Assembly (NCBI RefSeq): GCF_033153115.1
Contig: NW_026889750.1
Location: 45,322,001-45,386,000 of the forward strand
Direction: 5' to 3'
From: Saccostrea echinata
Taxonomy: Eukaryota
Length of the DNA stretch: 64,000 nucleotides
Shown: in pieces, positions 7,701-62,100 of the stretch
Position numbering within the stretch: the first letter of the stretch is position 1
Layout of the letters: every line of letters starts with the position of its first letter
Program-made: the position numbers and the translations under genes
The notes under the pieces: model-generated
Seen by the model: only the letters and a program-made list of their open reading frames with translations
The model's database searches: none
What the model was told of the DNA's origin: nothing

Positions 7701-10700
7701 AATAGGCGCATGCTGCCGAAAAATTTTCATTGCTTAAGAATTTTATAGCCAAAAATGAGAGAAAATACCGATAGTGATTTTCATGTATTACATTGGTAGT
7801 TTTAATTTTTACTAGCCCAAGGGGCTACCTCCGTGCAGAAAACTACTAGCCCGACCCCAAAAAATGGTAGCCCCGGGCGTCGGGCGATGCTAATTGCACA
7901 CCCCTGCTTAGCCCCCACCCTGGAGCCTAAACATTTAACAATTTTTGGTAGAGGGCTCAATGCTTATTATAATCATGCCAAACAGTTTGCCTGCTATATG
8001 TCTAGGAGTAAGAATATTTTTGGAGATTGCATTAATTTTCATAATTTTGGTCCAGGGGAGCAGAGATTCATAAAATTCTTAATTTTTTTCTCCTTTCCCC
8101 ATATATGCTAATATAGCAAAATTGGTTGAAGTTGGTTCAATGTTCCTGAGAAGAAAATGAAAATGTTCAAAAGATAATGCACAACAATGGATAATACAGA
8201 TATCAATAGATCACCTGAGTTCCAAGAAATGTCTACAGACAGACATGGTGATATCCATATAACTGATGTCAAGTTTCCAACAAACCTTTTAAATCTCAAT
8301 GTACATGTATGTCCTCATTTGTGAAATTTCATGACTTGTTTTTGAAACGTCCTTGTTAACATTGTAAATTGTGGCTTGAACTCTTTTATACAAAAATAAC
8401 ATACATGTACATTGCAGTATGAATTCAATGAAATGTAAATTTAAAAGTTAACAGTCCAGCTGTATGCCCTTAAACATATCTAGTGCTCTGGAAACATGAT
8501 ATAAAGAGTTTTTTGTACAAAAATACAAACTCATTACAAAAACTACAAACTAGAGCTAAATGTACACTGCATGCCTTTGAGATACACTGCCTTGGTGTGT
8601 GATGACCTTTACTGACCTTCCTGAGTTTACTGGGGGTCTTTGTGGGCGTAGTCAGGAAGCGTTTCTTGGCAGGAGTAGACGGCTTACTACCATAAATCAT
8701 CTCTTCCTCCATCAATCGAGCCTTTGCTTTGTGCTGGAGAAATAAATCAAACAAGACATTCCCAACTGATTTTAACATTGCAAGCAATGAAAAAACAATG
8801 AACTGAGAAGCCCCCCCCCCCCCTTTACTTTTTAAGTTACGATTCAAATTAGCATTGTCAAATCTTAGTTTACTTTGAGTAACATATAATCAGACTTTAA
8901 CATTAAACATCAGAGGGATGGCTTGTTGCTAACTGATGTAGTACTAAAGCTTTTTGTGACAGCCTTACAGGAAATAATACAGTTCTAATATACCAGATTT
9001 ACCAGATTTTTTTTATACATGTCACATCATAACTTTGGTTAAAAGACATTTGATAGCTAGAATTTAGATAGATTTTTCAAGGATAAATACCCTTTGTTCT
9101 TTTTCCTTGATTTTCTGCTCTTCATAAGCGGCCCACTGTTTCTGTACAAATTCATCAAAAGCCACACCCTCTACCAGGAATGGCTGGCTATGTTCTGCCT
9201 CCCATTTAATAACTGTTTCTTTAAGTTCTTCTTCAATCTAGATACATTTAATTATAATGTCATTAGATTGCCGTAAGATCACTTTACAAAGAAAACTACA
9301 AGAAGTTTCACTTTCTGCAGGTCAGTCTACAGTTCCTGTACCTTTCCGCATTCAAAGTGCCAAAAAAAGTTCTAAAATCTACATTTAGAGCAAAGACTGG
9401 TATGGTAATATTGTAGATAATATACTGTAAGTAGAATGTATTACAAAAATTGATAATTATTAAATACACATTCCATGTACTTCAGAAAGGAACCTGCACT
9501 TTGCTGACTGTACACTCACCCTGTTCAGATCCTACAGGAATGAACCTATCATCTGTTGTAAATAATTATTTCAATAGTGGTCGTTATTTCAATAGTGGTT
9601 GCAACATACCACCTTAACCTTCTAACCCCAGGCAGATCCTAGAGAAATGAACCTATAATTGGTTGTATCACCCTCAGAGCTCCAGATAAGGTGCATATTT
9701 GCAGAAATACGCATTGAATTTTACAAAATATGCATTGAAAATTAAAACTGGGAGTACAGTTATGCACAAACAATCGTAGATAAGCATTACACCACGAAAG
9801 TACTGCGTATGACGGGTTGAATAATAAAAGTACGACTTAGCTAACGATATGAATTGAGGTTAACTCAGTATTTGATTTTTCTCAAAACGAAATACTGATT
9901 TAAAAACGTTTTATTAACCAGGAATATTCAAGTAATGGTGACAATGATTTTCAATTATGGAGAAAGAATCAAAGATATAGATTAAAATCGATTTCTTTAA
10001 ATAGAAGACTTTGCACTAGGCATAGTTACATGTACTTTTAAGCACACAAACGCTTGTGTTAGCTATGTAAGATGATATTGTAACAAGTGTAATGCATAAG
10101 TTAAGAAAACAATGTTACCTAGAAAACAAACGATAGTTGGAGGAAAAAAGTCAAAGCTGGAGAAAAAAGTTTATCCTTCAATGTTATCAAAGAGGACATG
10201 ATGTGTAAGAAAAAAAAACATTAAGACCATATTAAAACCATATATTGAATAAACAAGCTCTATTTAATTTCAAGACCTATTAAATAAATAAATTGCAGTA
10301 GAGAGACATTATGCATAACATGTATTTGAATTTACCGATCAAGACTTCTCTTAGATTCTGTAGAGTTCTCTGTTTAGTAGGACGGTTACACACAATTTGT
10401 ACATGACGTTTTTTATGATGGGTTCTTCTTATTTCTGTCAACTTGCCAGATTAAGATTTTTTTCTCGGTTTACTCTTGTTACGATATCATCTTAAAGGAA
10501 ATGTTTTATGTGCCTATGGTAGCTTTTACCTACTGTATGATCTTCCTTGTCAAAAAGGAACACTTCTCAGTTTTAGCAAAAAGTCTAATTGGTATTTTCA
10601 AAATTTATCTAAATGAATGCAGGAACTTTCCTTTGTAGTTTTTTTCCTTTCCTCTTCTAAAACACTTTATTTCGATAGCAAGCTCAAAATCAAAATAGAT

Positions 10701-13700
10701 GTCAAAACATTACATGTGTATATATTAACAAAATACTCTTAAATCATTTTGCTGAAAATCAAAATCTGCATTGATTTGAAAATCAGGGAGTAAATACACT
10801 TTAGGTTAAAAAATTATCTGGAGCTCTGACCCTTAACCATTCACCCATTCAGATCCTAAAGATATGAACCTATAATTTGATGTACCACTTTTTACCTCTC
10901 ATCCTGTTCAGATCCTTCAGAAATAAGCCTACAATTTGTTGTACCATCTACTCACCCCAGACAAATCCTACAGAAATGAGCCTGTAATTTGTTGTACCAT
11001 CTACTCACCCCAGACAAATCCTACAGAAATGAGTCTGTAATTTGTTGTACCATCTACTCACCCCAGACAAATCCTATAAATGAGCCTGTAATTTGTTGTA
11101 TCATCTACTCACCCCAGACAAATCCTACAGAAATGAGCCTGTAATTTGTTGTACCATCTACTCACCCCAGACAAATCCTACAGAAATGAGCCTGTACCTT
11201 GTTGTATCATCTACTCATCCCAGACAAATCCTACAGAAATGAGCCTGTAATTTGTTGTATCATCTACTCACCCCAGACAAATCCTACAGAAATGAGCCTG
11301 TAATTTGTTGTACCATCTACTCACTCCAGACAAATCCTACAGAAATGAGCCTGTAATTTGTTGTACCTACCATTTACCACTCACCCTGGGCAGAATCTTC
11401 AGAAATGAACCTATAATCTGTTTTACTACCTTTTACCACTTACCCTGGGCAGATCCTTCAGGACTTTTTTTCTTGCCTTTTCCTCCTGAAGTAATTTACC
11501 TCCACGGTTGTTAAATCTGTTGGGATCATTTGCTTTCCTCTTCAAAACAGAAAAGAAATGGCATCAGTTGAATCACAGTCCACCAAGTTTACATTTTCCA
11601 ACACCAATACATTACAATATCAGTATGTATATATTTATATATTTCATAAAATGAGGTAAAGAGTGGCAAAAATATTTATCTTATAAAACTGAAAGCTCTA
11701 GCATATTACTCCTCGAACTAATGTATAAAATAAAACTACATGCTGTTGATAACTTGCTTACATACCTCCATTTCAATCATCTGCCGAAAGTGGGAATCCC
11801 ATCGTTCCAGATTTTCAAACATTTGTTTATGATCCTCGTAATACTTCTTCAGTTTTTGAACTTCTCTATCATGCTCGTCTAATAGAGCCTCTGTATAGTT
11901 TTCTAAAAAAAAAAAAAAAGAAGAGTTTTTTTCTCTCAAGAAAACTTATAGTAATTAAAGTTCAGATCTATGAAGTTTAGCAGAATGTTTCAGCCATATG
12001 TACATTATAAGACTTTTTAACAGTCAAACATTTGGTTTTTATGAGATTTCTTACCATTAAAATAAGCGGTGAAATCTTCCCTCTGTTGTCTACTGAAGAA
12101 GCACTTATCCCACCATTCAACGATCTCTTTCCTCATGCCCTCCACAAATCGCTGAATATTATCAAACTTGAGCTTCTCACAACGTGCTATTTCAGCCTTT
12201 AGCTATAAGCACAAACAGATATTTGAATCAACATGATTGAATATCAATAAAATTCCATAGAAGTATACGAAATGGTCAATATTAAAGCTCTGTAATCATA
12301 ATAATAATGATGCCATAATTAAGGCTGGGTATCAGCTGGGAATTTCATATTGCGATATTTTTTAACTGAATTGCGATATGTATTGCAATATTTTCAGTAA
12401 CAGTTAAAATGATCTTTTCTTATTTTATTGACCTCCATTTAAGCAAAGTGTGGATAACTATTATAAATGTGTTGTAACAAAAAAGTTCTTGTTGATTTCA
12501 CTACAGTTTTGCAACAAAATGCAATCATACAACAGCAACCTTAGTGTTTGGCACAATTGATATCGTTTCTGACATCTTGAATTATATATTTTACATAAGA
12601 AATCCCAAGCCCAAGCATTTTGCAGGTATATCAGTATTGGAAAAAAATGTATCGCAATACGATATTTTTGGTCAACGAATTGCAATATACCAGAATATTG
12701 ATATTATTGCACAGTCCTAGCCATAATCACCAAAAGAAAACATTAAATTGCAATGTTTTCTTATACTATATATATATTGGAGTTTTTCCCCATATAATGA
12801 GGGGTTAACATTGATATTCAGACTCAGAAAAACTAAAACAATAATCCATAGCCTTTTTTTAAATGGGATGTTTGTCTGGTGTTGCACAAGACTACAAGCA
12901 TTTCCATCTTGTTTATACTTGTATCTTATGCTAACCTGACTTGTTTTTTCCCTTGCCAATACTAGAGAATTTGTTGGTCAATTTGGAAAATTTCAGATAA
13001 AAATATTTTTTGTTCATATCTTATAAACGTAACTCTTCATCAACAAAATGTTTATTTGGAAAGATTCAAGACTGACTAAAGCTCTGCTACAGTAAAGCTT
13101 TAATGATTTCAATAGAACTTGTTATAGAGCAGCAATCACATGTAAAGGCAAGAAACAGAAAAAACAAAATAATATATTTATGTTTATTTGAAAAATTATT
13201 GAAAAATAAAATTTACTTCTTAAGTTCTTATCTACTTATCTATTTTTTTCACATCATTACTGGAAACAGACCATTTATTTATTTTGGGAAGAAGAAAGAG
13301 AAGTAAGATTTATGCTAGCAACAATCAAGCCCCCCCCCCCCCCCCCCCCCCGCAGTAAATTGATTGAATTTTAAATGATATAATTATTTAATACATGATA
13401 AAGTAATTAATGGATATAACTCTAGATGCCAAATGAGTAAACTAAATAACTCAAGACAACAGGGTGCTTTTTTAATTACTCAGGTGAATATGATATACAA
13501 GAGAATATTATGGTACAAAAGTATATTATTAAACATTATACTCATCATCATAAAATAATTCAATACCACTAATTCATTAAGAAAAAGAAACCATCTTTCC
13601 TTTTTTCAAACACAGACTTACTGCCTCTATGACGGGGGGTTTGATGCCAGACTTGTCTTTCCTAAAGTGACTTCTCTCAGCCTCAGAAATCTCCAGTCTA

Positions 13701-25850: not shown

Positions 25851-26079
25851 ACAACATAAATAGTGAAATGTTTTAAGAATTTTTGGCACATAATACTCTA
25901 AGATTGGCCGTTTAGGAAAACAAGTCCAAAAGTATTGCATGTGTATCTCTATGATCTGCCGTCTAATTTTTTTTCGTCCAGTTGTACAGCTTTGTAAACG
26001 TATATCAGAAGGCAGAAAACAGTTTATTTTGAATGTTTTTAAATTATTAGATATCATAATAACGATGAAAATAAGTATA

Positions 26080-26718: not shown

Positions 26719-26749
<31 letters not shown>

Positions 26750-26983: not shown

Positions 26984-28940
26984 ATGTCCGAATAAATGAT
27001 ACTCATTATAATTTGAACTTTTTCATAAGAAAATTTCATAGTTTTAATGAAATTTAAAGATACTGAAATAATTTATCTGACTGTATTATTTTTATGGTAT
27101 TCGTCATTTGCACAGGAAAGTCATTCTGACTCAGAAAGCATGCATTTTTGGCTAATATTTCCTATAGTTATTTGCAAGTCTATTGATTATTACAAAATGA
27201 TAAGACATGCTTGAGTCAAGAGGTGTCATGACACACGATGAAAAGGGGGTGGGTGGGGTGAAAGAGGGTGAATGGCATGATGAAAGACAGAAAAGTGACT
27301 TTGATATTCCAGAAATATAAGTAGCTGGGACCAAATCACAGCTCAATAACGAGCAAATAAGTCTGACTAGAAAGAAATTCTCTGATGAGAAATTTTGCAA
27401 CAATATAAAAATGTGTTTGTGTTTGAAGAAAGGGGTGTAACTACACCTACGAAGGCGAATTATAACGTTAAATTTTACTTTTAAAATCACTAAAATTCAA
27501 GTTCGGGGTGCTTAGCCCCCTGACCCCCCACAAGGACTTTGCCTTGGACCCACTGGAGGCCTTGAGTCGGTCCCCAGACCCCCTGTCTCTGAAAAAAATT
27601 CACACCCCAACCCAAATTCCTGGAACGCGCCTGACGAGTTCATTGAATGTATAAAAAGATACATTCACATCACATCATAAGGTGCTGAGATAGTCTAATC
27701 TTACATCACATAATCAAGAACTAACAATGTGTTGGCATAATGTTTAGATAGGATCACAACACGTATCGCCAAATAAAGTGCTGACATAACGGCTTACTAA
27801 TCACGGTAGAAGAGTTTGGATATGCAGTTATGGCGTTCCGTATTTATTTTACTCCAGTGGCATGTATAAAGAGTAAGTAAACGATACGAAAAATTAATCC
27901 ATTAACTAGAAGTAAAGTTTATGCAATTAGAGCCGAACGTGAACGAAACTTTTGTTTTATTCATATCTATAAATATTGCATATGGAGTTTCCTATAAAAT
28001 ATATTGTGGAATGGATGTTTTAAAAAAATGAAATTGAATTTTGTTGAGAATCGATATCAGTTTTAATAACTTTACATAGAAAAGCTTTCCCAGACTGTCT
28101 CCTGAAAGCTTCGTGTTAAAATTTTGAAATTAAAAAGTACTAATTAACTCTGAATTATATTTATATCCAGCCTAAGATACCTTTCCCTCGCAAGCTTGTG
28201 AATTCCACAAGGATTTTTGTAAAGTTCTTCTAGATAACATCAAATAATTTCTCAGGGCTCTGAAATGAACGTTTTGTCGCCGAATGGAATCGATACTAAC
28301 AGTGTCGCAAGGGTATACTTTACAGTCATTGTATAATTCAAACAACCCTTTTTAATACACATGCAGGGATCATAGACAAGGCAACTAGATTAAAGACATA
28401 CAAATACATTAAGCTAAACGAGAGTTCATCGTCATTTTGATCAGCAGAGAATGGTCCATTTATGTATATATACATCATTAGATATTGAACAATTCATTAA
28501 GTCTGTACTGGCAGACTCAGCTTCAGCGGCGACAAATAAGCTTTTTGATCATACTTAGGAAAAATAATCGATTCCGAATTTTATTTTGACGACATCTGTT
28601 ATTGCGTAAGTCTGTTTATATAAAAAAAAAAAGTCGTCCACCCTTTCAAATATACATTCAAATTAAATATTAAATATTCATGTAAGAATGCTATTATATC
28701 GTTTGTGAGAAGCCCGAATATGGAATCGATTGATTTCATCGTCACCATAAAAGAAACCTCCCAAACACTATCAGGAGCTCTGAACAGTCAGTCAAGCAAC
28801 AGACAGGATTTGTGTAGAGGCTCGCAGAAAAGGAATTCCTAGCTGTGGAAGAATGTAGAGTTTTTGTTAATGTCATATTTTTCGATGTGAGTTGTTAAAT
28901 CGATTCACAAGGAGGAAACAAATGAATTGTTAAATAACAA

Positions 28941-30797
28941 ATGCTGACGCAAGGTATTCCAACGTCTGATTCCTCACCGGTCAGACCCAGAACCCCCGCC
29001 TTGTCCGAGTTTGTCTGCGGACCATGTAGTTTCAGTCGGATTTATTCGAGAGGGACGTTCTACTGCCCCGTATGTAAGGAGCTCTTTTGTCACAATTGTG
29101 CCAAGCTCCATCGAATGAAGGAATGGTCACAAAATCACGCCATAGTACTTCTAGACAAAGCTAATTCAAAGCAGCTAAAGGCTATCGCATCGCAAAAAAT
29201 TTCAAAATCCGAACGGGAATCGTCACAGCGGCCACAGCGGTGGGGGAGGAGGGCACCACTTAACGAAGGGTTTGAATCCAAGTCCAAATATCTGAACGCC
29301 TTGGCCAGTAACCACGATCACGAGACAGAGGACTTGGAGAATGAATTGTACTGTCCGGAGCATGATGTTGTCTTCTGTCTGCGCTGTAAAGACCCCCACT
29401 CTGAGTGTAAAGGGACGGTTCCTATTGTTTCATTGGCAAAAAAGATTGAAATCGCTCAAGTTATTTCAAACTACAAGAGATGTGTTAAATTCGCGGATAT
29501 CATGTTAGAGGATCGACTTGAACAGAAGAAACAGGTCGAATCACAGAGAAGCGAGATAATTCCAAACATTCAGTCTATGAAGAACCATTTTGGTAACATG
29601 ATAAGTAAAAAGGCTACAGTGATAGAAAATGAAGTTTCTATCAAAATAGAACAAAATATTAAGAAAATTCATCAACATATGGAAAAATGTAAGCGTGTGA
29701 AATACATGGCACAGTCTGATCTAGACAGTCTTCTATCTACCGTAGAAAGAGCAGTGCCAGGACCCATTGTTAAAGTGTATCTCCGACTGAAAGTCAAATA
29801 TTCGGTCTTTGAGAAATATCTTAGAGAGTTATATAACGACACAGAGTACGTATCCTACCAGTTTGTGCCAAATGAAGAGATAATGACTCTACCAAACATC
29901 ATCTCATCTATTGGAACTCTGAAGGAAACCAAAAGTTCCTCAAAGTTACCTCCCTTTATGTCGGTAGACAATGTCAAACCTTTCAAAGAAAGGTCGCTAA
30001 CTTATCGTAAAAACGGTGACATTCGGCTGTTTGGACTCGGTGTTCTTGGAAAGGGAGGAATCACATCCATGCGATGTACGGCAAACTATATAATGGCAGT
30101 GGCTCGGAGCACGTGCGAGTTTCGCGTGTTCACGTTACGTGGCTGGACCTTTGCCCATTTAACGCTCTCATCACTGCCATGGGATTTTACTATGATATCT
30201 GAAAAAGAGGCTATTGTCAGTCTCCCTGGTGATAAGAAATTGGTGACCTTGACCATTGATTTCACACTACGTAGAGTAACACAGACAAGGGAAATTATTC
30301 TGGATGAGGCATGTTGGGGATTGACAGAATTTAAGGGAAAGTTGATCGGCACATTCTTGCCTTTTGAATTAGACGCTCATTTAAGGGTCATGACCTATGA
30401 CGGAACCATGGAGAGAAAAATTGAAATCCAGGATTCTCCAGTGGCGTTTCGAGCACCACAATATGTGTTGTATCATGAGGATAAAGTGTACATTTCGGAC
30501 AGTTATTCACATGCACTGATTATCATTGACCTAGATGGACACGTAACGTTTGCCTTCAAAGTCGCCGAGTTCGAGAATCCGGCGGGAATGACCGTTGATG
30601 ATCAGGGGAACGTTTATGTTTGTGGGAAGACGTCACATAACGTTTTCCAGATCTCGAGGGAGGGGGAAATCCGGGAAATTCTATCCCAGGAGGACTGCCC
30701 CTCGCGACCTTGCTGTATTGGTCTGCTGGGGGACGGATCCACTTTACTAGTAGGATATTCAAACTCCAACGTGTTAAAATCATTTCAGTTTAAATAA
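28941..30797 (+). CDS. Intronless RING-less TRIM-like protein: B-box(es), coiled coil, NHL/6-bladed beta-propeller (618 aa)
   Basis: Single ORF. B-box CGPC..CPVCKELFCHNCAKLH..H, degenerate second B-box CPEH..CLRC..H..C, helical middle region, NHL-like blades (PWDFTM, CWGLT, VYISDSYSH, NPAGMTVDDQGNVYVCGKTSHNV). Confidence 0.9.
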   Translation: MLTQGIPTSDSSPVRPRTPALSEFVCGPCSFSRIYSRGTFYCPVCKELFCHNCAKLHRMKEWSQNHAIVLLDKANSKQLKAIASQKISKSERESSQRPQRWGRRAPLNEGFESKSKYLNALASNHDHETEDLENELYCPEHDVVFCLRCKDPHSECKGTVPIVSLAKKIEIAQVISNYKRCVKFADIMLEDRLEQKKQVESQRSEIIPNIQSMKNHFGNMISKKATVIENEVSIKIEQNIKKIHQHMEKCKRVKYMAQSDLDSLLSTVERAVPGPIVKVYLRLKVKYSVFEKYLRELYNDTEYVSYQFVPNEEIMTLPNIISSIGTLKETKSSSKLPPFMSVDNVKPFKERSLTYRKNGDIRLFGLGVLGKGGITSMRCTANYIMAVARSTCEFRVFTLRGWTFAHLTLSSLPWDFTMISEKEAIVSLPGDKKLVTLTIDFTLRRVTQTREIILDEACWGLTEFKGKLIGTFLPFELDAHLRVMTYDGTMERKIEIQDSPVAFRAPQYVLYHEDKVYISDSYSHALIIIDLDGHVTFAFKVAEFENPAGMTVDDQGNVYVCGKTSHNVFQISREGEIREILSQEDCPSRPCCIGLLGDGSTLLVGYSNSNVLKSFQFK

Positions 30798-32093: not shown

Positions 32094-32233
32094 NNNNNNN
32101 NNNNNNNNNNNNNNNNNNNNNNNNNNNNNNNNNNNNNNNNNNNNNNNNNNNNNNNNNNNNNNNNNNNNNNNNNNNNNNNNNNNNNNNNNNNNNNNNNNNN
32201 NNNNNNNNNNNNNNNNNNNNNNNNNNNNNNNNN
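32094..32233. other. Assembly gap (140 N)
   Basis: Run of N. Confidence 0.99.
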
Positions 32234-34559: not shown

Positions 34560-36685
34560 TGAAATATGGCGATCACGAACAGTATTCAAGCTCAAAGTCC
34601 ATTTAAACAATACAAATCGGGAGCAGAGCAAACATGGACCTCCAAAATCATCAGAGGGGGATCAGGTGCCATTGAGGAGCGAGCATCCCCTGCCGACCGG
34701 TCACACCCGCCGTGTGCTCCTTGTCATGAATGGGAAAACGGAAAAATCCGTAGGCAATTAAGTGTGTTAGTAATGGCCTAACATTAGTATGAAAAAAGGT
34801 CAGTCAGCATTTGACTTAAGATGGGTTGTATTTGCTGACAAGGTCATTCTATCGACCATAAAACTTGTAAAACGATGACTTCAGACGAGATTGTTGATAT
34901 CCTTGTTTCATCAACTTGTTTGTCAATAACTTGCCTCGTTTTAGAAATTGTTCATACGTAGAGCTTGCTCTTGCCTATCGAATCAACTGGGAGACAAAAA
35001 CCCCATGTGCAGGTGATAAGGGTATATTGCTATAGAAGTAAGGAAAGTTGACGATTGAAAAATTGAAGTCATCAAGTTTGTCATAAAGCTTTGTAGTTAG
35101 GTTACTATTAAAGTCTTTTTTCAAGTAAAATATCCAAATATGAAACAGATGTGTCAGACTCTGTGGTATCTTTTATTTCAAGCTCACTGGGATATATCGA
35201 GTCGACAAATGAATGGAAGTAACTATTGTTAATTGATAATACGTCGTCGATATATCTAAATGTCGAGTTGAAGGCCACGACAAGTGTTTTCTTCTTCTCA
35301 TGTAGAAGTTTTTTTAAAAATAAATTCTGCTTCATATGAATACAAAAATAGGTCTGTTAACAAGGGGGCGCAATTGGTACCAATTGGAATTCCAGCAGAT
35401 TGTTGAAAGATCTGATCTCCAAAAACTACATAGATCGTCGATCAGAAACTCAAGCATCTTTTCAATATCAGAGTACTTGTGTGTACAATCAGAATGCTTT
35501 TTAACGAAATAATTTTGCAAATGACCAATGAAAAGTAAGTATATTTACGAGTTCCATTTTTATTGAAAAAGCAGCTGTCAGTGATGTCAAAAAGCCTGGA
35601 CTTTAATTTATTGTGGGGAATGGTTGTATAATGTGTTGAAAAGTTGTACGTTTTGATGTTATTGATTTTGTTAAAATTTTTTGATTTCAAATTTTCTAAA
35701 AATTCCTTGGAGTTTTTAAGTATCCACATCTGATTTACACCACTTCTCGAATATACTGTTGCACAGTACTCTTGAAGTTTCTCCTTCAATGCTGTAAATA
35801 TTTTAGTGAGGAGTAAAGAAAGAGGCTTGGTAGAACATTTACTGAAACCTGCTATGTATCTTTGTTTGTAAAGATTTTATGGAGTTTTGGAATCCAGTAT
35901 CGGTATGGTAATTCAAATTCATTTTGATTGTTGGGAATATTTAAAACTGATATATTGTTTTTGAAGAATTTCCTCCTTAGAAAGTGAGCTATGGGTATAA
36001 GTTGGATGACCAATTGCAGAATTAAATCCTAATTCCTCTAAAAAACAATTCAAATAATGAGCCTTACAAACAAAGACAATGTTGTTAACTGCTTCGTCAC
36101 CGGGGACCAGTGCATACTGATCGTTTAATAAATCTAATTCTTGTTTCACATCTGCATTGTCGAAGACAGAAGGATGGATGGTTGTCATATTGCCCCTCAG
36201 TCGCTTAATCCGCGATTTCAACATACATCTGATACATTTAATCCATTCTGACAAAGTGTCAAGGTCTTCTTTTTCTTATTTAGTCCATCGCCTGGCGTAA
36301 TCTTCCACTGAATTTATAATATTTATGAAATTATGACGCCAGTTGAAAGATCGAGGTTCCCTAAACTTAGGCCCTCTTATAATTACTATATTTACGTCAT
36401 CAGTAATGACGTGTCCAGAAGGACTATAGTTGTAGGGTGAAGGAGAATATGATCACGTTGGAGGATTGTGTTTCAGATGCTCGATATCTAGGCACTGTAG
36501 AGTTTTTTTTTAATAATTAAAAAGTTTGAAAGCAATTGTCGATGTATATTTGTTAGAAATACAAGGTGTTGACTTCAACTTGAAATATGGTGGAATACAA
36601 AACTGTACCTTTTTGTGATTAAGAATATTACTTATATTAACTGCGTTAATTCCTTTCTTGGTATATTGAAGTTAAAGAAACAAAC
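34560..36685 (-). mobile_element. Longer Penelope-like retroelement copy, frameshifted
   Basis: ORF pieces LVPGDEAVNNIVFVCK, GVNQMWILKNS, TYNFSTHYTTIPH, FRYIDDVLSINN, SYLDI in successive frames. Confidence 0.88.
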
Positions 36686-42912: not shown

Positions 42913-43660
42913 CGTGAAGGAGATGGGTGAACAAGTCGTGTAGAATGCCTATAGCTTCAGATATGTAAAAATTATATTCAATTTGCGACTTTGTATTTAG
43001 AGTAAAGTTATCTTTAATGAGTTTCATGAAATTATGATAAACAAAACTTTTCTGACCAAAATTTTCTCGACAAAATTTATTTGGTTATTAAAAAATAATG
43101 TGGTATTCGTGGGGTTCGAACCCTAGCAATAAAAATCCAAAGTATAAATTTTTCTTTAAGACTAGCACGCTAACCACTACGCTACACAGCTCTTGCTGAA
43201 GTGTGGCATTTAAATCATGTTTGTGATGTGATCTTTGACTAAATGGACTTTTTCGGAAGATGCGAATGTTGCTTCATAAAAGTGTATTTTTAAAGTATAG
43301 TGGGTCATTGCTCCATGCATGTTTTTGTTATCCAAAAAAAAAAATGTATATCTTTACGCAGACTTTGAGAATAAACTTTCCAAAAAAATGGAGCGAAGAC
43401 CCACTCACATCGAAAAATTGTGTTAAAGTATGAGAAAATTATCCCTTTCTGCCCTCTTTAGTGTGTGTATGCTATTTCATAGGCAAATAATTTCAATCTT
43501 TGTAAGATCTTTGCAAATTTTGGAGATTTTACATAAAGTATACTTTAATGTTAGATGAAGTATCAAATAAATTTTGTTATAATACAGATTTAATTTTTCA
43601 CCTTCATGTTTGTCGCACTATAGGCTCTTCGCTCGCCTTGTTCGCCCATCTTCTTCACCT
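42913..43660. mobile_element. TIR element carrying a tRNA-derived segment
   Basis: Imperfect ~40-bp TIR gtgaaggagatgggtgaacaag..gcctatag / ctataggc..cttgttcgcccatcttcttcac; internal A/B boxes at ~43108-43192 (minus). Confidence 0.7.
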
Positions 43661-46600
43661 TATTACATGTACTCCCAAATCGGAATTTACGAAAACTCCA
43701 GAATTGATAAGGCAATATATATAAAGTATTCACATGTATTCATTTTTTTCTAATGACACAACAAATCGCATTTTATGCTCTAAAGAAAAAAAAAAGTCAA
43801 GGGACAGGTATCCTCACAACGTCAGGTCCTGAGTCCAATCATGACCGGGTTCCACGGACACTGGTGGGCTGTATAGAGGGCGAGGTGCAGTTAACCCCAT
43901 TGGAAGTTATTGTTCAAATAAACTCGCATCTCGCAAGCTGTCTATTTAAGGTTCAACAATACTCTGATAAGCGAGATAACTCTTAATGACGAAAATGTTT
44001 ATTATTCCTTTTAGATTTGTCAGGTTGAAATGTCTTTTTTTGTCTAATTTTGCCCCGCAAGCTGTGCTATGATTGTTTGTATTACATGTATACTTAAAAA
44101 TTACATTTCTTTTGGAAAATTATGAATTAAAGCAACATTTTATATGAGTTAGCAAATGGTTTAGGAACCTTAAACGAATGGACGCATATCCCGTGGCTTG
44201 CGACAATGATAGAATCAGTAAAGTGAATACCATTTAATTCCATCCAAGCAAATTATTTTGCCCGGGCTAGACCTTGACCACAACCTATGATATTTGTAAA
44301 GAGAAAATTCAAGGAAGAGGATCAATTATCAAACACCAAAGGAATTTACTGACGATGGTGGTATTGCATATAACAAACATATCAATATTTTGAATCAGTT
44401 CCCAATTCCAAGTGTACTACCCGCTTTAAAAACATTTTAATGCAGTTTTGTGTCATTTAATTATTGAAATACAACAAGCAAAATCAGCAAATTTTCTATG
44501 TGAACATTCTTGATGATAGATTTTATCTATAGAAGAATGTAAACCCTAAATGAATAGGAAGCCGATTCTACTTATTAATTTTTGTGTGTGATGAAGAGAT
44601 CATAAAGCTAATATCTAATGTAAAACCTTAAGGTATGAAAAGAACCATTGAATTGAAAAATTCAATCCTGTTGCATTGCCAGAAGTCGAAAGTTAATTAG
44701 AAACAAAGTCAATAAACCCTTATATTGATTACCCAAGGGAAGGAAGGAAGGTGACTACAGTAATCGATTCCAAAAATATAAAATATTTTGTGTTAAAAGC
44801 TGATATCGAGTGAAAGAGAAATACTAATCAACTAATATGTACGTCAAATTAATTCAAAAGTTTTCCTTGGCAACTCAGTTGGATACAAACAATCAACACT
44901 GACGTAAAAATCTCTGATGACATTGCAACTATTTTAATCATTAGTTGTAAAACAAAATAACGGGGAGAAAAAGATGAGAAAATTTTAATTTTACCGTTTG
45001 AGTTGAATTATGTTTAGAATTTTAAACGTAAAATCGAATTTGTTTCAAAATCTCTGAACATGGGCACATAAAACTTGCTGACAGGATATTGTTTTTCAGC
45101 AGTAGAGATGCCAATACAGATAGTCTCATTTGATGCAAAATCTATTAAAATACCATGCAATAAATTCCATCAGTCTCTTGATTACATTTACAAATGTAAA
45201 TGCTTTTGTTTATTGTTCTTGGTGCATGGAACAAAATCAATCATCCTTCACTATATAGCTGTTTTTAATCTAGGAGAAAAAGTTAATATTCAGTGGCGGA
45301 TTGAATTTGTTTGGGGGAAGGGTGAGACCCTAAGGGGGGAGGGCACGGGAGGGGCAGGACAGTACAACGCGGTGGGGGGGGGGGGGGGGCAAGGGGACCC
45401 GGCCCCCAACTTTTTCTGAGTATAGTATGTTGCTATAAATTTTCATTTAGATGCTGGTTCCCCCCACCCTCCCCGACTTTTTGTTTCTGTAAGGTCGAGC
45501 ACTGGCAAATTCTAGGATTTTGGGCAGTTAAGGAGGTTCTTTTTTTTGCTTTTCAGATTATTTTGAGAAGTTGTCCCCCACTTTTTGGACAGTTTATTTC
45601 GTTAGATTTTTTGGGAGGTTGGCCCCCACCTTTGAAACCGTTTGCTACAGGCCTGGAGGGGTAACCCCACCCATTTGTGGGGTGGGGGTTGGGGATCTCC
45701 ACCGATAATTTTTTTAAAAAATGGCTCCAAATGTTGCATTTTCCAGCATTTTAGATTGAATTGGTTAGTTTTTGCCTTTCTTTCTTGCTTTGACGGGGCC
45801 TCTACTGGACATATACATTTAAGTTATACCACAATTCATTATACAAAGTTGTAACCGTTGAATTTTTTTTATAACATCATTCAACTGTAATAAAAAAAAT
45901 ATTTGCAGATCTTTTGCTTTTAAAATGTTTATTTCAATGTAACTTCCATCTACACAAAAAACACTATTCAATGCAATTTTATTTTACTATAGACTTGACC
46001 CTTTCGGTACAGATCACAACGTAAACCGTTAGAACTGGGGGGGGGGGGGGGTTTACTTTCTCGGTAGTAAAGCTAACTTGATTGGTAAAATACCGGTATT
46101 TTATTAAACGTTAATTTAAGTTTTAAAAAAATGACACTTGTAAAAAACATTAGGCGCCCCCCCCCCCCCCCCCCCCATACACACACACTTATATTGAAAG
46201 AGAATCACGGGTTTTTATATTTTGTGTCGAACACTTTCTCCTGAAATATTTATAAACGCTTATATTCCATATGGCAACTGGTATAAAAAAAATTGTGGCC
46301 ACATAAAAAAAGTCATGAAGTTCACAATTTTTATCACAGGCCAACTGCTCATTATAATCATGCAAACTTTTGCATGTCCATGAATAAAAATGGTACTCAT
46401 TAGCTACATGTATAATGTATTTTCAATATAAAATGAACTTTGTCATCCTTTGACCCAGAAGACTTTAATTCCAACCTCTTACAGAGAAATACCTGCTCAT
46501 TATATTCATAGAAACAGCTAGCCTGCTAATATCTTTGAGTAAAGAAGATTTTTAAAGCTGTAAAGTATTTTCAATATGCAGTCAAACCTTATTATCTCAA

Positions 46601-47508
46601 ATTCAATGGGACTGAGGAAAAAATTCTGAAATTTCCAAGAGTTTGAGATATTGAGGTTACAATACATAAAGAAAAACATGTTTTGGATTACCAACTTCAG
46701 TATTTCCATGGTATTCAAGATATTGATGTTCGAGAAACTGAGAGGTATGACCAGTTTAGCTCCAGATGCTTGAACCCTTGACTCATGGCCGGGATATGAA
46801 TTTCACAATTATAGCAGAGTCTACTGCTCATTTCATAATGTGGTGCATGAACTATGCCTGGATTAAAGTATCAGGTCATAGCTTCATGAACTTTCAAAAC
46901 TGAAATATATTTTATTGTACTTAATTGTCCACAATCTCTGAGATTTATGCGTAAAATGCTCAGCATCTCCAAAAACATCTTTGAGAAACATGTCAAAAGG
47001 TCCTCCTTCAAAGGTCTGATGTTAAATATAAATAAATATTCAAATATTGTTCTCAATTTTTTTCTATTTATTTGCATTTATTTGAGCAGTCCATTCATTA
47101 CTTATTTCCTTTGGCAGTTAAATATTTTTCATACATAAGGATATTCTTAAAGTTGAAGTAATACTCCTCTACAAACAATGATACAGGTTTGTCTACATAT
47201 TCAAGGAAGTTTCTTCTATATGGAAGTAAAAAGTTTCTAAATACAGCACATGGTAGATTGACTGGCCTATAAGGGTGTACTTATTGCTTATACACTGTAG
47301 ACTGAATATTAGTTTACAGTATTGGGTTATATCTAATAGATGATTAATTCTATATAACAACTTCCCATGTGTTATTTGTTCGTGTTATTTGTTGACACTA
47401 AGTTCTTGATGGTCCACATCCTCATTGCTGACAGATTCCCATATCAATGTAATATCCCCAGATAAACACTGTACTTTTAACAGAGAATGATTCATTGTTT
47501 CCTCCCCC

Positions 47509-50500
47509 TCACAATCCCACTAGCTCCTCCTTAGCGATCTTCCTTTTGTGGCTGTTATGAGTGTTATAATCTATTTGATCTACTCTACAGAACTCTCCTG
47601 TGTCCAGATTTTTGGCCATCAGCTGTTCTGGTGCTAAGTTTGGGGTCACATGCTGGATATACACACTGGAAACACAATAGTCCTGTAAATCAAAATAAAA
47701 AAAAGTTTATCACTTTTCCAAACTGAAAAAACACCTGGCAGTTGTTTACTGTAAAGAAAGATTTTTTATGCTGCATTATTTAGTAGTCTAGTCAATGTGG
47801 TAGAGTCATTTTCAGCATGTTCATGCACTATGATACGTAATCTGTGATTATAAAAAATCTACCCAGTTATTTTTCTGTGGTTACCAAAAGAAACTTATGA
47901 AAAGTTGTAAATATCAAAGTAAGTCTAATAATTAAAAATAGTTCAACTTTTTTTATCATGAGATAGTGTAGAGAAGAGGTAAAATAAACAATGTTTACAA
48001 TAATTACTAAATATTAATGTTGATAAATTGTACAAAGTTATGAGACTCATAATACCACTAGATAATGCATAGAAGTGGTGTAGAAAGATTACCTATAGAT
48101 ACTGAACAAAGTATACACACAGAAGTATGTAATATTACCACTAGATACTGTAGAAAAGTGGTACCAATAGTAATTTGTATATGATACCATGAAACACTGA
48201 AGAGAAATGGTACAAATAATATACATGTATTTCTGTACAATTACTAGTACTATAAGTATTGAGAAGTGTTGCAAACAGTATTTAAGTATGATTACCACAA
48301 AGAAATGTGAAGAAGTTATATTAATGTGAAATACTGATAATTTCTGTAACAAACAGTTATTTCTGTATGATAACTGAGATATAATGAATTCTCTATAAAT
48401 ACCATGAAATACTGTAAAGTAGTGGTAGAAATCAGTTTATCAGATACTGTAAATTAGTGGTGAATATCTCTCTAATTACCATCAGATATTGTAAATTAGC
48501 AGTAGATATCTTTATAATTACCATGAGATACTGTAAAGTAGTGGTAGATATCTGTTTACAGCCATTCAGGTAAATCTCCTCCAGGTAGGGACAGTTGTTG
48601 GCGATACAGAAGATGGATTTATCTGTGATGTTGTTCACTCCAGACAGAACAAGGAAAGCTAAATCCTGACAACTTCCACTCAAGGTGCATAAACCAGTGT
48701 CTGTTACCTGTCAAGTATATAAACCACTGTCTGATACCTGTCAGTTATATATACCACTGTCAGATACCTGTCAAGTATATAAACCAGTGTCTGTTACCTG
48801 TCAAGTATATTAATTATAAACCAGTGTCTGTTACCTGTCAAGTATATTAACCATAAACCACTGTCTGTTACCTGTCAAGTATATAAACCATAAACCACTG
48901 TCTGTTACCTGTCAAGTATATAAACCATAAACCACTGTCTGTTACCTGTCAAGTATATAAACCATAAACCAGTGTCTGTTACCTGTCAAGTACATATACC
49001 AGTGTCTGCTACCTGTCAAGTATATAAACCATTGTCTGTTACCTGTCAAGCATATAAACCATTGTCTGTTACCTGTCAAGTGTATAAACCATAAACCAGT
49101 GTCTGTTACCTGTCAAGTACATAAACCATTGTCTGTTACCTGTCAAGCATATAAACCACTGTCTGTTACCTGTCAAGTGTATAAACCACTGTCTGTTACC
49201 TGTCAAGTATATAAACTACCGTCTCTTACCTGTCAAGTATATAAACCACTGTATGTTACCTGTCAAGTATATAAACCAGTGTCTGTTACATGTCAAGTAT
49301 ATAAACCATAAACCAGTGTCTGTTACCTGTCAAGTATATAAACCATAAACCAGTGTCTTTTACCTGTCAAGTATATAAACCAGTGTCTGTTACCTGTTAA
49401 GTATATAAACCATAAACCAGTGTCTGTTACCTGTCAAGTATATAAACCATAAACCAGTGTCTGTTACCTGTCAAGTATATAAACCAGTGTCTGTTACCTG
49501 TCAAGTATATAAACCATAAACCAGTGTCTGTTACCTGTCAAGTATATAAACCAGTGTCTGTTACCTGTCAAGTATATAAACCATAAACCAGTGTCTGTTA
49601 CCTATCAAGTATATAAACCAGTGTCTGTTACCTGTTAAGTATATAAACCAGTGTCTGTTACCTGTCAAGTATATAAACCAGTGTCTGTTACCTGTCAAGT
49701 ATATAAACCAGTGTCTGTTACCTGTCAAACACTGGTACCTGTCAAGTATATAAACCAGTGTCTGTTACCTGTCAAGTATATAAACCAGTGTCTGTTACCT
49801 GTTAAGTATATAAACCAGTGTCTGTTACCTTTTAAGTATGTAAACCACTGTCTGTTACCTGTCAAGTATATAAACCATTGTCTGTTACCTGTCAAGTATA
49901 TAAACCACTGTCTCTTACATGTCAAATGCATATCATTTTCCTGTTACCTTACTATACATCCTCCCTGATATCTACACTCCTGAGTCTTTTTTTTTACCTT
50001 ACTACATCCTTTGATTCCCAGCCTCTGGAGTTTGGGAGTGTTCTGAGCCAGCAGACACAGGAGATTGTCATCCACACATCCAACCCCTCCCAAATCTAGA
50101 CTGCACAGATTATTACAATAGGTAGCAGCTGCACACAATACCTCATAGCTTATCTAAGGCAAAATAAATTGTACATGTAGATCAATCAATATTATTATTC
50201 ATACATGTGTATATAATTATTTTCATAAGATTTTTATTCTAATTACCTGAAAATTACAACTGAAATTATTAAAATAAATTCAAATTTTAATTGTTCTCTA
50301 AAAATGATTTGCTACACCTCATCTTGAAACTATATCTTAATGATGAGTTTTAAATGAAATCATATTATTCCACACTTTAATTGTTTTAAATGACACCAAA
50401 TTGCTACCTTTCTGGAGGACAGGAATAGCTTGGTGATGTGCTGAGCCCTCTTTGGGTCCTCTAGTAATGGTAGGAGAGACTCCCCTGTAAACTCATGACA

Positions 50501-53500
50501 CATACTGATGTTGAGAATCTCCAGTGAGGTGCAGTATTTACTGATGGACCTCAGGCCCTCATCTGTAAAATCTTTCTTCCTCATGCCACTAAGGTCGATC
50601 TCTACCAGGCTGGATCCTCTCTTCTCCATAATCTAAAATATTTCATTATAAATAGCCTCACTTATACAGTTTCTCAACTATGTCCCATTTAGAAATAACA
50701 AGCAAAGCAATTTAATAATCTATGTGTATGTGATATTTTAACTGCTCTTTTGGCAAATTGTAAATTTAACGGGTAGTTATTTTACAATAAACTTGTTAAA
50801 TCTTACTTCAGTGTTGCAGAAAGGTGCCAAGAGAGGTAACTCTCCTTGCACAATATATAAAACATTCAAGTGAAGTTGATACCATGTTTAATTTGGCTAA
50901 AATTTTACAGATTCTTAGATTTTCTGGTACATGTAATGACTCTTGATGAACCTCTATTCAGGAATGTGATTTACCTGAGTAAATGTGTCATCATCTAGAC
51001 AGGGAATCCCACAAAGCCGGACAGACTGGAGGTTCCTCAGTCTCTGCAAGGCTTCAACCAAAATCTCCTTGTCCTCCAACATAATTCCACATAAGGAAAG
51101 GGTTGTCAGGGTAACTGGAAGTGTCCATAGTGACTGGTTGTCTGGACTGTGACTCAGCTGTACACAGTAAGACAAATCCAGGTTCCTCAAAGAGGTACAG
51201 CCTTGTGTTAGCTACAATCAGAAAAACAAAGAGGTACAGCCTTGTGTTAGCTACAAACAGGAAAACAAAGAGGTACAGGCCTGTGCTAACTACAGTAAAA
51301 CAAAGAGGTACAGCCCTGTGTTAATTACAGTAAAACAAAGAGGTACAGCCTTGTGTTAACTACAGTAAAAGAGGTACAGCCCAGTATTAACTACAGTAAA
51401 ACAAAGAGGTACAGCCCTGTGTTAACTACAATCAGGATAACAAAGAGGTACAGCCCAGTATTAACTACAGTCAAACAAAGAAGTACAGCCCTGTGTTAAC
51501 TACAGTAAAACAAAGAGGTACAGCCCTGTGTTAGCTACAATCAGGAAAACAAAGAGGTACAGTCCTGTGGTAACTACAGGAAACAAAGAGGTATAGCCCT
51601 GTGTTAACTACAATCAGAATAACAAAGAAGTACAGCCCTGTGTTAGCTATAGGAAAAACAAAGAGGTACAGTCCTGTGTTAACAACAAAAACAAAGAGGC
51701 AGCCCTGTGCTAACTTCAGAAAAACAAAGATGTACTGTCTTGAACTAACTACAGGAAAACAAAGAGGTACAGCCTTGAGCTAACTACAGGGAAACAAACT
51801 ATAACTATAGAAAAACAGCGGTACAACCCTGTGTTAACTACAGGAAAACAAAAAGATAAAGCTCAGTGTTAACTAGAGGAAAACAAAGAGGTAAGACCCT
51901 GTGTTAACTACAATCATGAAAACAAAGCAGTGAGAGGGGCACATCTCAAAAACAGAATATTCAGGGTAATAAATCTCAAAAACAATTTATTAAGAAAGGA
52001 CTTCTTAACAGAACAAATGATCACCCTTCCTCCTTAAATAAGAGGTTATCTACATAATAATTCTAACTGTTTAGTTTTAAATAATCTTGAAGCAATTATA
52101 CTGTGTAAATTTAAAATTTTTATCCAGTAATTTTTTTTCTTTGAGTAAACGTAAGATAGTTAACATAGTTTACCTTTAACAGTGAACCTCCCGTTATTCT
52201 GGGACATCCATAAAGACTTAATCTGGAAAACACAATTCATTTGCATTGTGACACTTTAGTAAGATGAAAATGACAAATACTTTGTCATGGAATCAAACAC
52301 TCCTCATACATGCATGGTTTGTAATAAAAATAAAAGATGCAGTTGTAACTTTGACAATGTTATTGGGTCCAATTCACCCCCACTCCCTTTGATCCACCTT
52401 CTAGTTAATGCTGAATGCTCATGATCAAAATCCTGTACATGCAAAGTTTGATATTTTTTAAATTACCTTAGTGTGTTGAAAGTTTTTATTACCAATTGCT
52501 GATTAGCCTTTAAAAATTAAAAAAAACTGATAAACAGATAGTGTGGCAGACAGCCATGTTTAACTAAAAAATTGTATTAAATTTGGGGAAAAAACAGAGA
52601 GTAATGAGATACTTACACTTGAAGATTGGGACATCTGGTGGCTAAGACACACAAGCATACATCACTGATTGTGTGAGGGGCAAAGTGTAGCTCCTTCTGT
52701 AACAATAAAAAGTGTAAGAATTAAAAACCTGAAAACAAAACACAATAATGCAGAATAGTTTTCAGAATAACACATTTAACAGTTTATTTCTCTTTTGGTG
52801 TAACCAGGTTGGGAATTCTTTTGATAGAACATAGGTGTCTTTGTGGTCTGCATCCCCAGTAGAACTGATGAAGCATCCAGGGCATGAATAAGACTAATTA
52901 TTGTTGGATGAACCAAATGTTTATAACTTTGGTTTTGATACCATCAAACTGACTCAACTACTAATCTCAAACATGCCTTTACAGAGACTCAAATAGACAG
53001 GCATATAATGTGATTTCACTACCTTTCTCTTTGTTGTTAGGGAACGGGGTATGAATAAAAACTACAGCTTGATGCTAAATATCAAAACTATTACTGATAT
53101 AAAGCAAACATACCAGTGTTGGACCCACAGTCTCTGCGATATCATGAAATAATAGATCATCATATTTGTGGTTACCCTGTCCTGCCACACGGAGAACTTC
53201 TATGCTGGGATTATTCTGTAAGACGGTGAGAACACCTATAAAGGATAATAAGATCATGTCACAACTGCTGCTGACTGTGTGTATTTTTTCAAAATTACTG
53301 TTAAACATTTACAGACTGGGGAATACTGTACAGTAGAATTAAAAAAACCCAATAAATTGGGTCTTTTGCATGAAATCAGTACAGAATTATAAATCTGTTT
53401 TTATTTTTTGGTGTTTTAGGATAAGTTTGTGTTTGTTTGAATTATCATTACTGAGAATAACCCACCTTTTGAATTCATCTGGGAGCAGCCCTTTAAATTA

Positions 53501-59100: not shown

Positions 59101-62100
59101 ATTGAAAATGTTAGCATAACAAGAAGAAACTTAGGTATTTAGATTTGGATTTCAAATTTATTTCAAAATTATATTATGACCCCCCCCTTTCCCCTCTTCC
59201 ATATCAAATATGCATATTACGATGCAGTTGAGATTATTAATGATTTTGTTGAAGTTCTGTTTAAACTTCTATCATATCTTTCTTTTTTTACCGTTATCTC
59301 TTTACAGAGGACGAGTCGGAGGGTGAGAAAACTCGGGAGGATTTACATGAAGTAACCTTACATAGGGATAGTCCATCACAGAATCTAGGATTCAGTATCA
59401 GGGGCGGATCAGAGCATGGTCTGGGGGTGTATGTCAGTGAGGTAACACCCGATTCTTTAGCGGGTGAGTTGATTTTGTAGGAGTTAATATCACACAGTAC
59501 TGTTTTTGTATTCAAAAACCTTGATTTATTTAGATTTTTTCACAGATAATTAATCACGACATTCTTGCATCTACAAATTTGATCTAAAATTAGCTTAACA
59601 TTACATGGAATCTACGGAAGCAAGGAAACTTTTGTGTTACACATGTTAAATTTTATCCTATGATAAAATGCACACAAATGCTTTAAATTATTTCCTTGTT
59701 ATTCAGAAAATTCATTAACATATCTTTCATTAGTATTGCAGTAGCCCTCCTCTCTTAAAATTGCATCATTTTGTTCCGGTTTGGTAAAAAAAAATCAGCC
59801 ATTAAAAATATTTATAGTCATAAAATAATGTATATTTACACTAATCCTAAATACATGTAATTATTAAACCTATTGACACCAGATTGACTGAACAATTAAT
59901 TGAAGGTTTTCAAAAAGGAACAAAAAGAGAATTTGTTTTTAAATCTTACTTCTTATATGGTCAGCTGGAGCAGGATTGGAGTTTGGTGACAAAATCTTGT
60001 CAGTAAATGGCGTCAGTCTAAAGAATAAGTCCAGCAGTATTGTGGCGAGTCTTATGACCAGCAGCTCAGATATCAACATGACACTGAGGATGACCGGGCA
60101 CCTGCCAAAATGGCGATTATTCAAGGAAAAGACAGCATGGTGAATACAAAATATGAATAATTTAGATTGTATACAATTTCCATATCTAGTAAAATCCTCC
60201 TATACAATATAATAATCATAAAAAACAACAAAATTATATTTAGAAAGAGGTTGAAGTAGGATTATTCAACTGCCAAAAGAGACAGGAAACAAAATTATTT
60301 CAGGTTTGACCACGAGAAAAAGACGGTAATATGTGGGGAGTTTGAGAAATCTGGAGCTTCACACTACATAAAAGGTCTAGACATGGATATTCCCGAGCGA
60401 AGAGTGACATTGATCAATGATGGAGTTCTGGGGCTCAATATTAGGGGAGGGTCAGAGTTTGGCCTGGGTATTTACGTGTCAAGGTAAGACAAGGTATACA
60501 CAGTGGAATGGCATCTCCTTAAAGTTCACTGACCCTCTGATAAGAGAGATAACTCTATTATTCCTTTATAAAATTGTCAAGTTAAAGGGACATTTCTGTC
60601 AATTTCCCCCTTTTGGTATGTTGAAATACTTTGCATTTTAATTATGATTATAAATCCTTACCATTCAAGACAAATTTTATGTAAGTGAACAGAGGAGTGA
60701 TGGACACTGAACATTTTTATTTAAAAAATTCAAAAATGCAGATATGCTCAGAACTTAAGATTCATTAGACTAAATTTTAATATGATTAATAAAACTTTAT
60801 CACTTTTTTTCAGCATTGACCCAGGGGGGCAAGCAGAACGCCAAGGGGTAAGGGTTGGAGACCAGATAGTGGAGGTCAACGGTGTTAAATTTGAAGACGT
60901 TACACATGCCAGGGCTGTAGATGTTCTAACGAGTCAGGACCACATAATTATTACACTGAGAGTAAGTCCTTCATTTAAAGTTACTCACACCACATCACTG
61001 AGAGTAAGTCCTAAACTTAAAGCTACTCACACCACATCACTGATAGTAAGTCCTAAACTTAAAGCTACTCACACCACGTCACTGATAGTAAGTCCTAAAC
61101 TTAAAGCTACTCACACCACGTCACTGATAGTAAGTCCTAAACTTAAAGCTACTCACACTACGTCACCGTGAGTGAGTCCTCCAACTAAAGCTACTCACAC
61201 TACATTCCTGTGAGTAAGTCATCCAACTAAAGCTACTCACACTACATTCCTGTGAGTAAGTCATCCAGCTAAACTACTCACACTACATTCCTGTGAGTAA
61301 GTCCTCCAATTAAAGCTACTCTCACTACATTCCTGTGAGTAAGTCATCCAATTAAATGTACTCACACTTCATTCCTGTGAGTAAGTCATCCAATCAAAGC
61401 TACTCACACTATGTCACTGTGAGTTCCTACATTTTAAGCTACATAACTTAGAGTAAGTCCTCCTATTGAACATTCACATCACATCAATGAAATTGAGTCG
61501 TTCATTTAAAGCTACTCACACTACATCGCTGAGAGTGAGTCCTCATCTGAAAGATACTTACTCTACATCACTGAGAGTAGATTCTACACTTTAAGCTACT
61601 CACACTACATCACTGAGAGTAAGTCCTCCACTTAAAACTACTCACACTATATCACTAAAAATAAGTTCTTTTCTTAAAGCTACTCACACTACATCACTGA
61701 GAGTAAGTCCTCCATTTGTAAGCTTCTCTAGTGATACTAGTATACAGATTCATCCCGTACATTTTTTAGCGAATGAAATTTGTTAAGAATGATATTTAAG
61801 AAAATAATTTATAAACGAATAAAAAAAGCTTTGAATTTTAAACAGGATGTTGGTCGATACCCGGCATTTAAAGAGGTGTATGGAAAATATTCTTGGATTC
61901 ATGGAAACCCTAAAGTTGGAAGTACGTTCTCACAATATATCATGGCACTGTATGAGATGAACAGTAATTGTTGAGTTGTTGAATATAGTAATTGTTAATA
62001 AAGTAATAGAAGAAAACACTCAGATTTTGTGTTTCTTTAAAATTTAATGCTGCTTGCTTTGTTTCAATTCCATATAGCACGCAAAAACAAAGCACTGCAT

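Follow-up and report, generated by a model that had tools for sequence, protein, structure and literature searches.

The stretch of DNA analysed here, referred to as the window, comprises 64,000 nt of Saccostrea echinata contig NW_026889750.1 (genome of 923 Mb in 425 contigs). Three unrelated genes in the window carry five tandem arrays, A1 to A5, whose units copy an exon–intron junction of the host gene. All five arrays were found by Tandem Repeats Finder (TRF), which is blind to exons. Junctions in the F-box/LRR-like gene were taken from transcript contigs of four runs (two studies) aligned to 47500-53400, and its exons were joined locally with a frame check and alignment to homologous proteins; assembled contigs of this kind drop rare variants. 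The junctions at A1 and A5 were fixed by the continuity of Pfam profiles. The host genes are as follows:

~8.5-15.2 kb, minus strand: PRC1/MAP65-like gene (Pfam MAP65_ASE1 on three exons)
~47.5-54.3 kb, minus strand: F-box/LRR-like gene (transcript contigs, open frame)
~56-63.5 kb, plus strand: harmonin-N and PDZ gene (Pfam USH1C_N and PDZ)

The arrays, together with the exons and insertions that define them, are:

10912-11461, minus strand: A1 as called by TRF, 53/59 bp, about 10 units
10830..11461, minus strand: proximal part of A1, about 12 units of 53/59 bp (TRF and sequence)
11444..11539, minus strand: PRC1/MAP65-like exon, 32 codons; A1 repeats its last 18 nt (MAP65_ASE1 positions 362-394, E 2.6e-11)
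9067..9237, minus strand: stop-free stretch with the next PRC1-like exon, acceptor 9237, at the 3' end of the A1 intron (MAP65_ASE1 395-443)
9674..10829: transposon of 1156 bp with perfect 16-bp terminal inverted repeats, inside A1
~9500..9673, minus strand: distal remnant of A1, about 3 degenerate units past the transposon (local alignment scores 24-37)
48439-48553, minus strand: A2, 42 bp x 2.7 (TRF; joint 47681/48521 in 4 of 4 runs)
48522..48707, minus strand: F-box/LRR exon with A3 upstream and A2 downstream (transcript contigs, open frame)
48689-49925, minus strand: A3, 30/36 bp, about 38 units (TRF; joint 48703/49994; unit profile)
49948..49985, minus strand: copy of the last ~34 nt of the upstream exon, in the A3 intron (local alignment)
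50975..51211, minus strand: F-box/LRR exon whose first 24 nt are copied in A4 (transcript contigs)
51188-51912, minus strand: A4, 35-39 bp, about 20 units (TRF; joint 51211/52174)
60725..60961, plus strand: stop-free stretch with the PDZ exon, whose end is the A5 junction (Pfam PDZ positions 31-72 of 81, E 4.4e-11)
60954-61714, plus strand: A5, 42 bp x 18.5 (TRF, sequence, Pfam PDZ)

In the PRC1/MAP65-like gene, each A1 unit consists of an 18-nt exon tail, GT(A/G)AGT and the head of the following intron. Since the MAP65_ASE1 profile runs through positions 362-394 in one exon and continues at 395-443 in the next, the first GT (11443) is the real donor (11444|11443), and all later A1 units are therefore intronic. 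The transposon that splits the array has at least 50 dispersed copies (74-91% identity), and the degenerate units past it account for the start at 9480 that the initial annotation had given. Central A1 units are 97% alike, with two proximal units and the distal units diverged and nearer the real junction.

The transcript contigs of the F-box/LRR-like gene are spliced GT..AG on the minus strand and define exons at ..-47682, 48522-48707, 49998-50153, 50408-50632, 50975-51211, 52174-52222, 52617-52696 and 53114-53237, which together form one open frame with a terminal stop. A2 repeats a 32-nt exon tail, GTAATT and the following intron (real donor 48522|48521). The A3 unit joins an acceptor (TTGACAG) to a 19-nt exon head (real acceptor 48708|48707), and that of A4 a pyrimidine tract and TGTAG to a 24-nt exon head (real acceptor 51212|51211). 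In the third gene, A5 units contain an 8-nt exon tail, GTAAGT and the intron head; the real donor is 60961|60962, and the exon end at 60961 coincides with the end of the PDZ domain. A protein search with the PDZ exon, with and without read-through, returned no matches and was uninformative on longer relatives.

Thus the initial annotation's claim of five arrays that each hold real exon sequence plus GT or AG is borne out by TRF, transcript contigs and Pfam, the copied exon amounting to 8-32 nt per unit. Its division into three donor-anchored arrays (A1, A2 and A5) and two acceptor-anchored arrays (A3 and A4) also stands, through contigs at A2-A4 and profile continuity at A1 and A5, as does its statement that every array extends into the intron only. 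Unit sequences and lengths are unrelated between loci. Across nine anchored arrays, including four outside the window that are described below, units measure 19-69 bp, of which exon sequence contributes 6-32 nt. Because the place of the junction within the unit varies, the splice site itself is not where the duplications break. By alignment, intron sequence in the A1 unit showed no similarity to the head of the next exon, and no likeness to the next exon was seen by eye in A2 and A5 units. These three arrays are therefore plain junction duplications and not copies of spliced sequence.

Each array places many potential splice sites in its intron. In 88-100% of units the decoy GT or AG has been kept, a level similar to that of the other unit columns, and there was no sign that decoys had been either disabled or specially conserved. 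At A2-A4, the three arrays for which transcripts are available, every long spliced contig of the four runs joins the exon-proximal site, so that in assembled contigs splicing uses the exon-proximal copy only. The initial annotation's view that the spliceosome tolerates tens of decoys agrees with both observations. Decoys in A2 (42-bp unit, 48439-48553) are in frame, as are those in five units of A5 (42 bp, 60954-61168); by the reading frame, use of a decoy donor in either array would insert 14 residues without a stop, for up to five units in A5. A donor weight-matrix test on the unit consensus was not discriminating (percentiles 0.82-0.99 for all arrays of at least 4 copies, perhaps inflated by base composition) and was not used. 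Within A3, a 67-nt contig from run X3 lies at 49414-49480, and run X1 has low depth at 49470-49863; this RNA signal may represent unspliced RNA, decoy use or DNA carry-over.

The frequency of anchoring was compared with that expected from uniform seeding. With approximate gene models for the three genes (23 introns, ~11.3 kb of non-array intron), the probability that five of five arrays fall on a junction is ~1.5e-5. Apart from these five, TRF listed no multi-copy array within introns of the three genes. An independent 200-kb block (G000:C2:5.0-5.2 Mb), picked before inspection, yielded three clearly intronic arrays:

L021:4536-4656: donor-anchored array, 30 bp x 4, at a WD40 exon
L026:7628-8788: donor-anchored array, 69 bp x 16.8
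L023:1676-1804: free intronic array, 26 bp x 4, starting 25 nt into the intron that follows an Ig exon, junction not copied

Two of these three are donor-anchored (p = 0.034 at the null rate); three more block arrays have an ambiguous context and stand outside this count. When window and block are pooled, 7 of 8 intronic arrays are junction-anchored. The free array at L023 contradicts the statement in the initial annotation that every intronic array not borne by a transposable element (TE) sits at a splice site. The related statement, that no such array lies free in mid-intron, holds for the introns of the three genes and fails in the block. In a sample biased by its selection through similarity to A3, two of three arrays were again donor-anchored, L005 at a CH_2-domain exon and L003 at another exon.

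We also searched the whole genome for three tandem perfect 5' splice-site octamers spaced 12-42 nt apart, with reversed words as controls. AGGTAAGT gave 484 raw matches against 97 for its reverse, and AGGTGAGT gave 322 against 230. Because raw matches were dominated by a few long arrays, distinct loci were counted instead: by hand and over the same contig range, there were 20 against 5 and 23 against 7, or 43 against 12 when pooled (p = 1.7e-5). Some of the control-octamer arrays themselves contain GTGAGT. Altogether, the excess of arrays at junctions is real, and the junction-array structure appears to be common in this genome.

Other repeats in the window and the block were noted alongside these counts. 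A locus-specific array of 48 bp x 66.7 (3.2 kb) at 22543-25702 is apparently intergenic, lying between the 5' end of the PRC1-like gene and a B-box open reading frame (ORF); its unit holds CAG|GTAATA, and neither end showed an exon. A free non-TE minisatellite and a relic of an unannotated transcript are the two readings considered. Dispersed satellites of 146 and 166 bp also lie within the window. The 166-bp repeat occurs in the window at 16245-17043 and 1194-1587, where both orientations are represented, and has at least three further occurrences in the block (L022, L026 and L031); it is probably a dispersed, TE-borne family, unlike the five arrays. In the block, a 63 bp x 4.1 repeat at L026:6076-6334 (block 136076-136334) lies within an exon and codes in frame for a 21-residue repeat; the donor-anchored 69-bp array is 1.3 kb away, apparently in the same gene. 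Three 20 bp x 8.8 arrays at L017:3536-6750 (block 43536-46750) lie at ~1.5 kb spacing in a seemingly triplicated segment.

The space between the three array-bearing genes of the window is occupied by transposon remnants, with TE reverse-transcriptase fragments at 20679-21176 and 34978-36275, and by one further long ORF:

28938-30794: intronless ORF of 619 codons with B-box-like cysteine motifs, between array-bearing genes

A gap of N at 32094-32233, whose flanks have no 14-mer in common, is intergenic, far from all genes and arrays, and without bearing on the finding.

Searched against the 923-Mb genome, each of the five arrays matches only its own locus, which upholds the initial annotation's view that the units are not dispersed TE satellites. 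The weak matches to A3 are other arrays with the common CAGGTAAC motif. Differences between species were seen at A2, A3 and A4. More than 10 other species share the boundaries of the A4 exon, and the A4 repeat unit was absent from the upstream read-through of the same exon in other species, even at 84% identity; A4 thus arose recently in an intron that is itself old. A2 was not seen in two relatives. An A3-type copy is present in a related species, in which one contig (P0067) encodes an extra acceptor and exon-head copy before the A3 exon.

The A3 intron (48708-49997, 1290 nt) consists almost entirely of junction copies, the array filling 1218 of its 1290 bases. It begins with 12 nt of intron start, followed by the copy of the upstream exon tail (49948..49985) and then by ~38 acceptor and exon-head units, every unit junction being CAG|GTAAC. 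The tail copy adjoins an old A3 unit with nothing in between, just as exon tail and head do in spliced mRNA. This fused copy scores 25 in local alignment, whereas none of 2000 shuffles scored above 18; the score of the tail alone was reached by 16 of 2000. Both ends of the intron are AG|GT, with six ambiguous bases at the joint. A neighbouring, ordinary intron of 254 nt has the same phase and interrupts its LRR unit at the corresponding place, and two close relatives have an intron at the A3 position (K|VTD). A3 is either a tiny ancestral intron carrying both a donor and an acceptor array, or an intron that arose from duplicated exon sequence.

Arrays of this kind have been described before. 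Tandem repeats that extend across the boundary of exon and intron were named "mirages" in amphioxus Adh3 (PMC3087553) and later found in the troponin C, globin (BflGb6/BflGb9) and PGBD5 genes (PMC3087553 section 16, PMC3902484). Amphioxus mirages occur at both boundaries, leave splicing intact and have unhomogenised edge units, and their origin was termed unclear (PMC3087553, PMC3902484). A1-A5 resemble them in that the unit spans a 5' or 3' exon–intron boundary, in that many units keep AG or GT while normal splicing is undisturbed (here by RNA at A2-A4) and, for A1, in that the centre is homogenised and edge units are left out. However, the host here is a bivalve mollusc and not a cephalochordate, the units are 19-69 bp in up to ~40 copies whereas amphioxus globin units are 150-160 bp in 3-6 copies, and five arrays lie in three neighbouring genes, with more in every extra sample. 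No report of such arrays in molluscs was found in our literature search, although absence from the searched literature is not proof.

A second precedent is intron 7 of human F7, which contains a 37-bp variable number tandem repeat whose first repeat spans the exon 7 donor and in which the upstream-most site is chosen (PMC1557585). As in F7, the first unit of A1 and A2 holds the real donor (A2 by RNA, A1 by the profile at 394|395). Identical downstream pseudo-donors are silent in F7, as decoys are in assembled contigs here (A2, by RNA). F7 differs in being a single locus of 5-8 copies on the donor side only, whereas the window also holds acceptor arrays that use the downstream-most, exon-proximal AG. 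Introns embedded in tandem repeats bearing AG|GT have been discussed as a route of intron birth (PMC10809524, PMC3265369, PMC4974935), and amphioxus mirages were proposed as raw material for new introns (PMC3087553). A3 resembles the intron-creation model in its AG|GT unit junctions and in consisting almost wholly of flanking-exon copies; A1, A2, A4 and A5 do not, as they lie in pre-existing introns and have true intron sequence in the unit. Recursive splice sites (PMC8605326) offer a further comparison, as A3 units juxtapose acceptor and donor (CAG|GTAAC) and stepwise removal is conceivable, but ratchet points occur singly, as conserved sites of very long introns (PMC8605326), and A3 has ~38 copies in 1.3 kb. 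Recursive intermediates were not observed, though contigs are a type of data in which they would not be visible.

We propose that the arrays are probably mirage-type minisatellites, which arise by local duplication across a junction, expand and are tolerated by position-dependent splicing. Judging from array anatomy, a short tandem duplication of 19-69 bp would happen to straddle a splice junction and so leave a second exon end with GT, or an AG with exon start, within the intron. Slippage or unequal exchange would then expand and homogenise the copies, a step suggested by the homogenised central units and diverged edge units. The array would persist because splicing picks the donor that comes first after the exon, or the acceptor that borders it, as the contigs show for A2-A4 and as is presumed for A1 and A5; with splice-site choice dependent on position, all other copies are removed as intron.

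Several points weigh against this interpretation or limit its reach. The junctions of A1 and A5 come from homology and not from RNA, and copy numbers come from a single assembly. Contigs hide rare isoforms, so that low-level use of decoys is possible, and small contigs are present within A3. The independent sample amounts to just 200 kb, with exons inferred from open frames and Pfam, and the octamer test was rough, having two controls only and raw counts swayed by a few long arrays. Lastly, the data bear on the existence of the junction bias and not on its cause. As to that cause, the excess may, in our tentative view, stem from duplications entering or expanding at a higher rate at junctions or close to them rather than from selection for function. 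Since the junction can lie anywhere in the unit, such a bias would act on a zone of tens of bases or on units bearing splice motifs, and not through a cut at the splice site. Of the junction-seeding process put forward in the initial annotation, the bias beyond chance (P ~1.5e-5) survives, whereas the variable exon share speaks against a cut by the splicing machinery at the junction; R-loop breaks and RNA-templated repair, its two other examples, are speculative. A doubtful, wider reading is that exon–intron junctions genuinely act as hot spots where short tandem duplications form in marine invertebrates with hyper-polymorphic genomes, bivalves and amphioxus alike. Such hot spots could result from repair or recombination intermediates that end where conserved exon meets divergent intron, or from transcription- or splicing-linked damage.

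Rather than being tolerated, the arrays might have been selected for a function: additional U1/U2AF sites could aid exon recognition, A3 could supply recursive-splicing ratchets, and the in-frame units of A2 and A5 could act as isoform switches or switches for nonsense-mediated decay. We regard this as improbable. Splice motifs are intact in nearly all units, but splice columns are no better conserved than others. For F7 it was proposed that a run of consecutive sites promotes splicing at the upstream one (PMC1557585). Anchored donors here are mostly strong already (by reading, 3 of 7 have GTAAGT and 5 of 7 have GTAAG), and unit sequences and lengths are unrelated between loci. In favour of function, the A3 unit junctions are AG|GT dual sites, a type usable as either splice site (PMC10809524), and A3 is shared with a related species; against it, A4 and A2 are absent in related species with the same exon. 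For A3 alone, we also considered that tandem duplication of exonic AG|GT sequence had created or rebuilt the intron, as in a Rogers-type gain or dual-site expansion. The order of its parts (12 nt, then the mRNA-like fusion of exon tail and head, then ~38 exon-head units), AG|GT at both ends with six ambiguous joint bases and the precedents cited above (PMC3265369, PMC4974935, PMC10809524, PMC3087553) are consistent with such a gain. However, the match in LRR position and phase to the neighbouring 254-nt intron fits an old intron, and the intron is already present in two related species; for these reasons intron gain is unlikely. Another reading of the fused copy is a donor mirage of two copies that adjoins an acceptor mirage, both within an old intron of very small size.

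Chance combined with ascertainment would be a further explanation, if arrays arose anywhere, ancestral introns were short and only arrays next to ORFs were noticed. Without their arrays the A3 and A5 introns measure only ~70-150 nt, which raises the odds of touching a junction, and both a free intronic array (in the block) and a large free intergenic array exist. Nevertheless, TRF, which takes no account of exons, finds no other array in these introns, uniform seeding gives P 1.5e-5, 7 of 8 pooled arrays are anchored and the octamer excess is genome-wide, all of which makes chance a very improbable explanation. The suggestion that the arrays are TE-borne satellites or assembly artefacts is already largely refuted and retains next to no probability. 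The window does hold dispersed 146- and 166-bp satellites, and the 166-bp unit recurs in the block, but the five units match only their own loci in 923 Mb. An artefact of assembly is countered by the RNA-run contig that lies inside A3 at full identity and by the related species' contig with an extra A3-type unit.

Mirage-type arrays, the interpretation we favour, are of a kind already known from amphioxus and human F7; what is new is the taxon, indeed the phylum, and the apparent density. Until now mirages were a curiosity of a few amphioxus genes, their origin unexplained. The occurrence of such arrays in every sample from a chromosome-scale bivalve genome would mean that the phenomenon is not confined to cephalochordates. 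It also carries a risk for annotation, as gene predictors may pick a decoy site or call the in-frame units of A2 and A5 coding. Many loci would allow the cause to be tested against expression, recombination, heterozygosity and intron age, and could show how spliceosomes ignore dozens of perfect decoys and how tandem duplication feeds intron growth and birth. If junctions were indeed hot spots, there would be hundreds to thousands of arrays per genome, longer introns and, occasionally, a new intron, for which A3 is a candidate.

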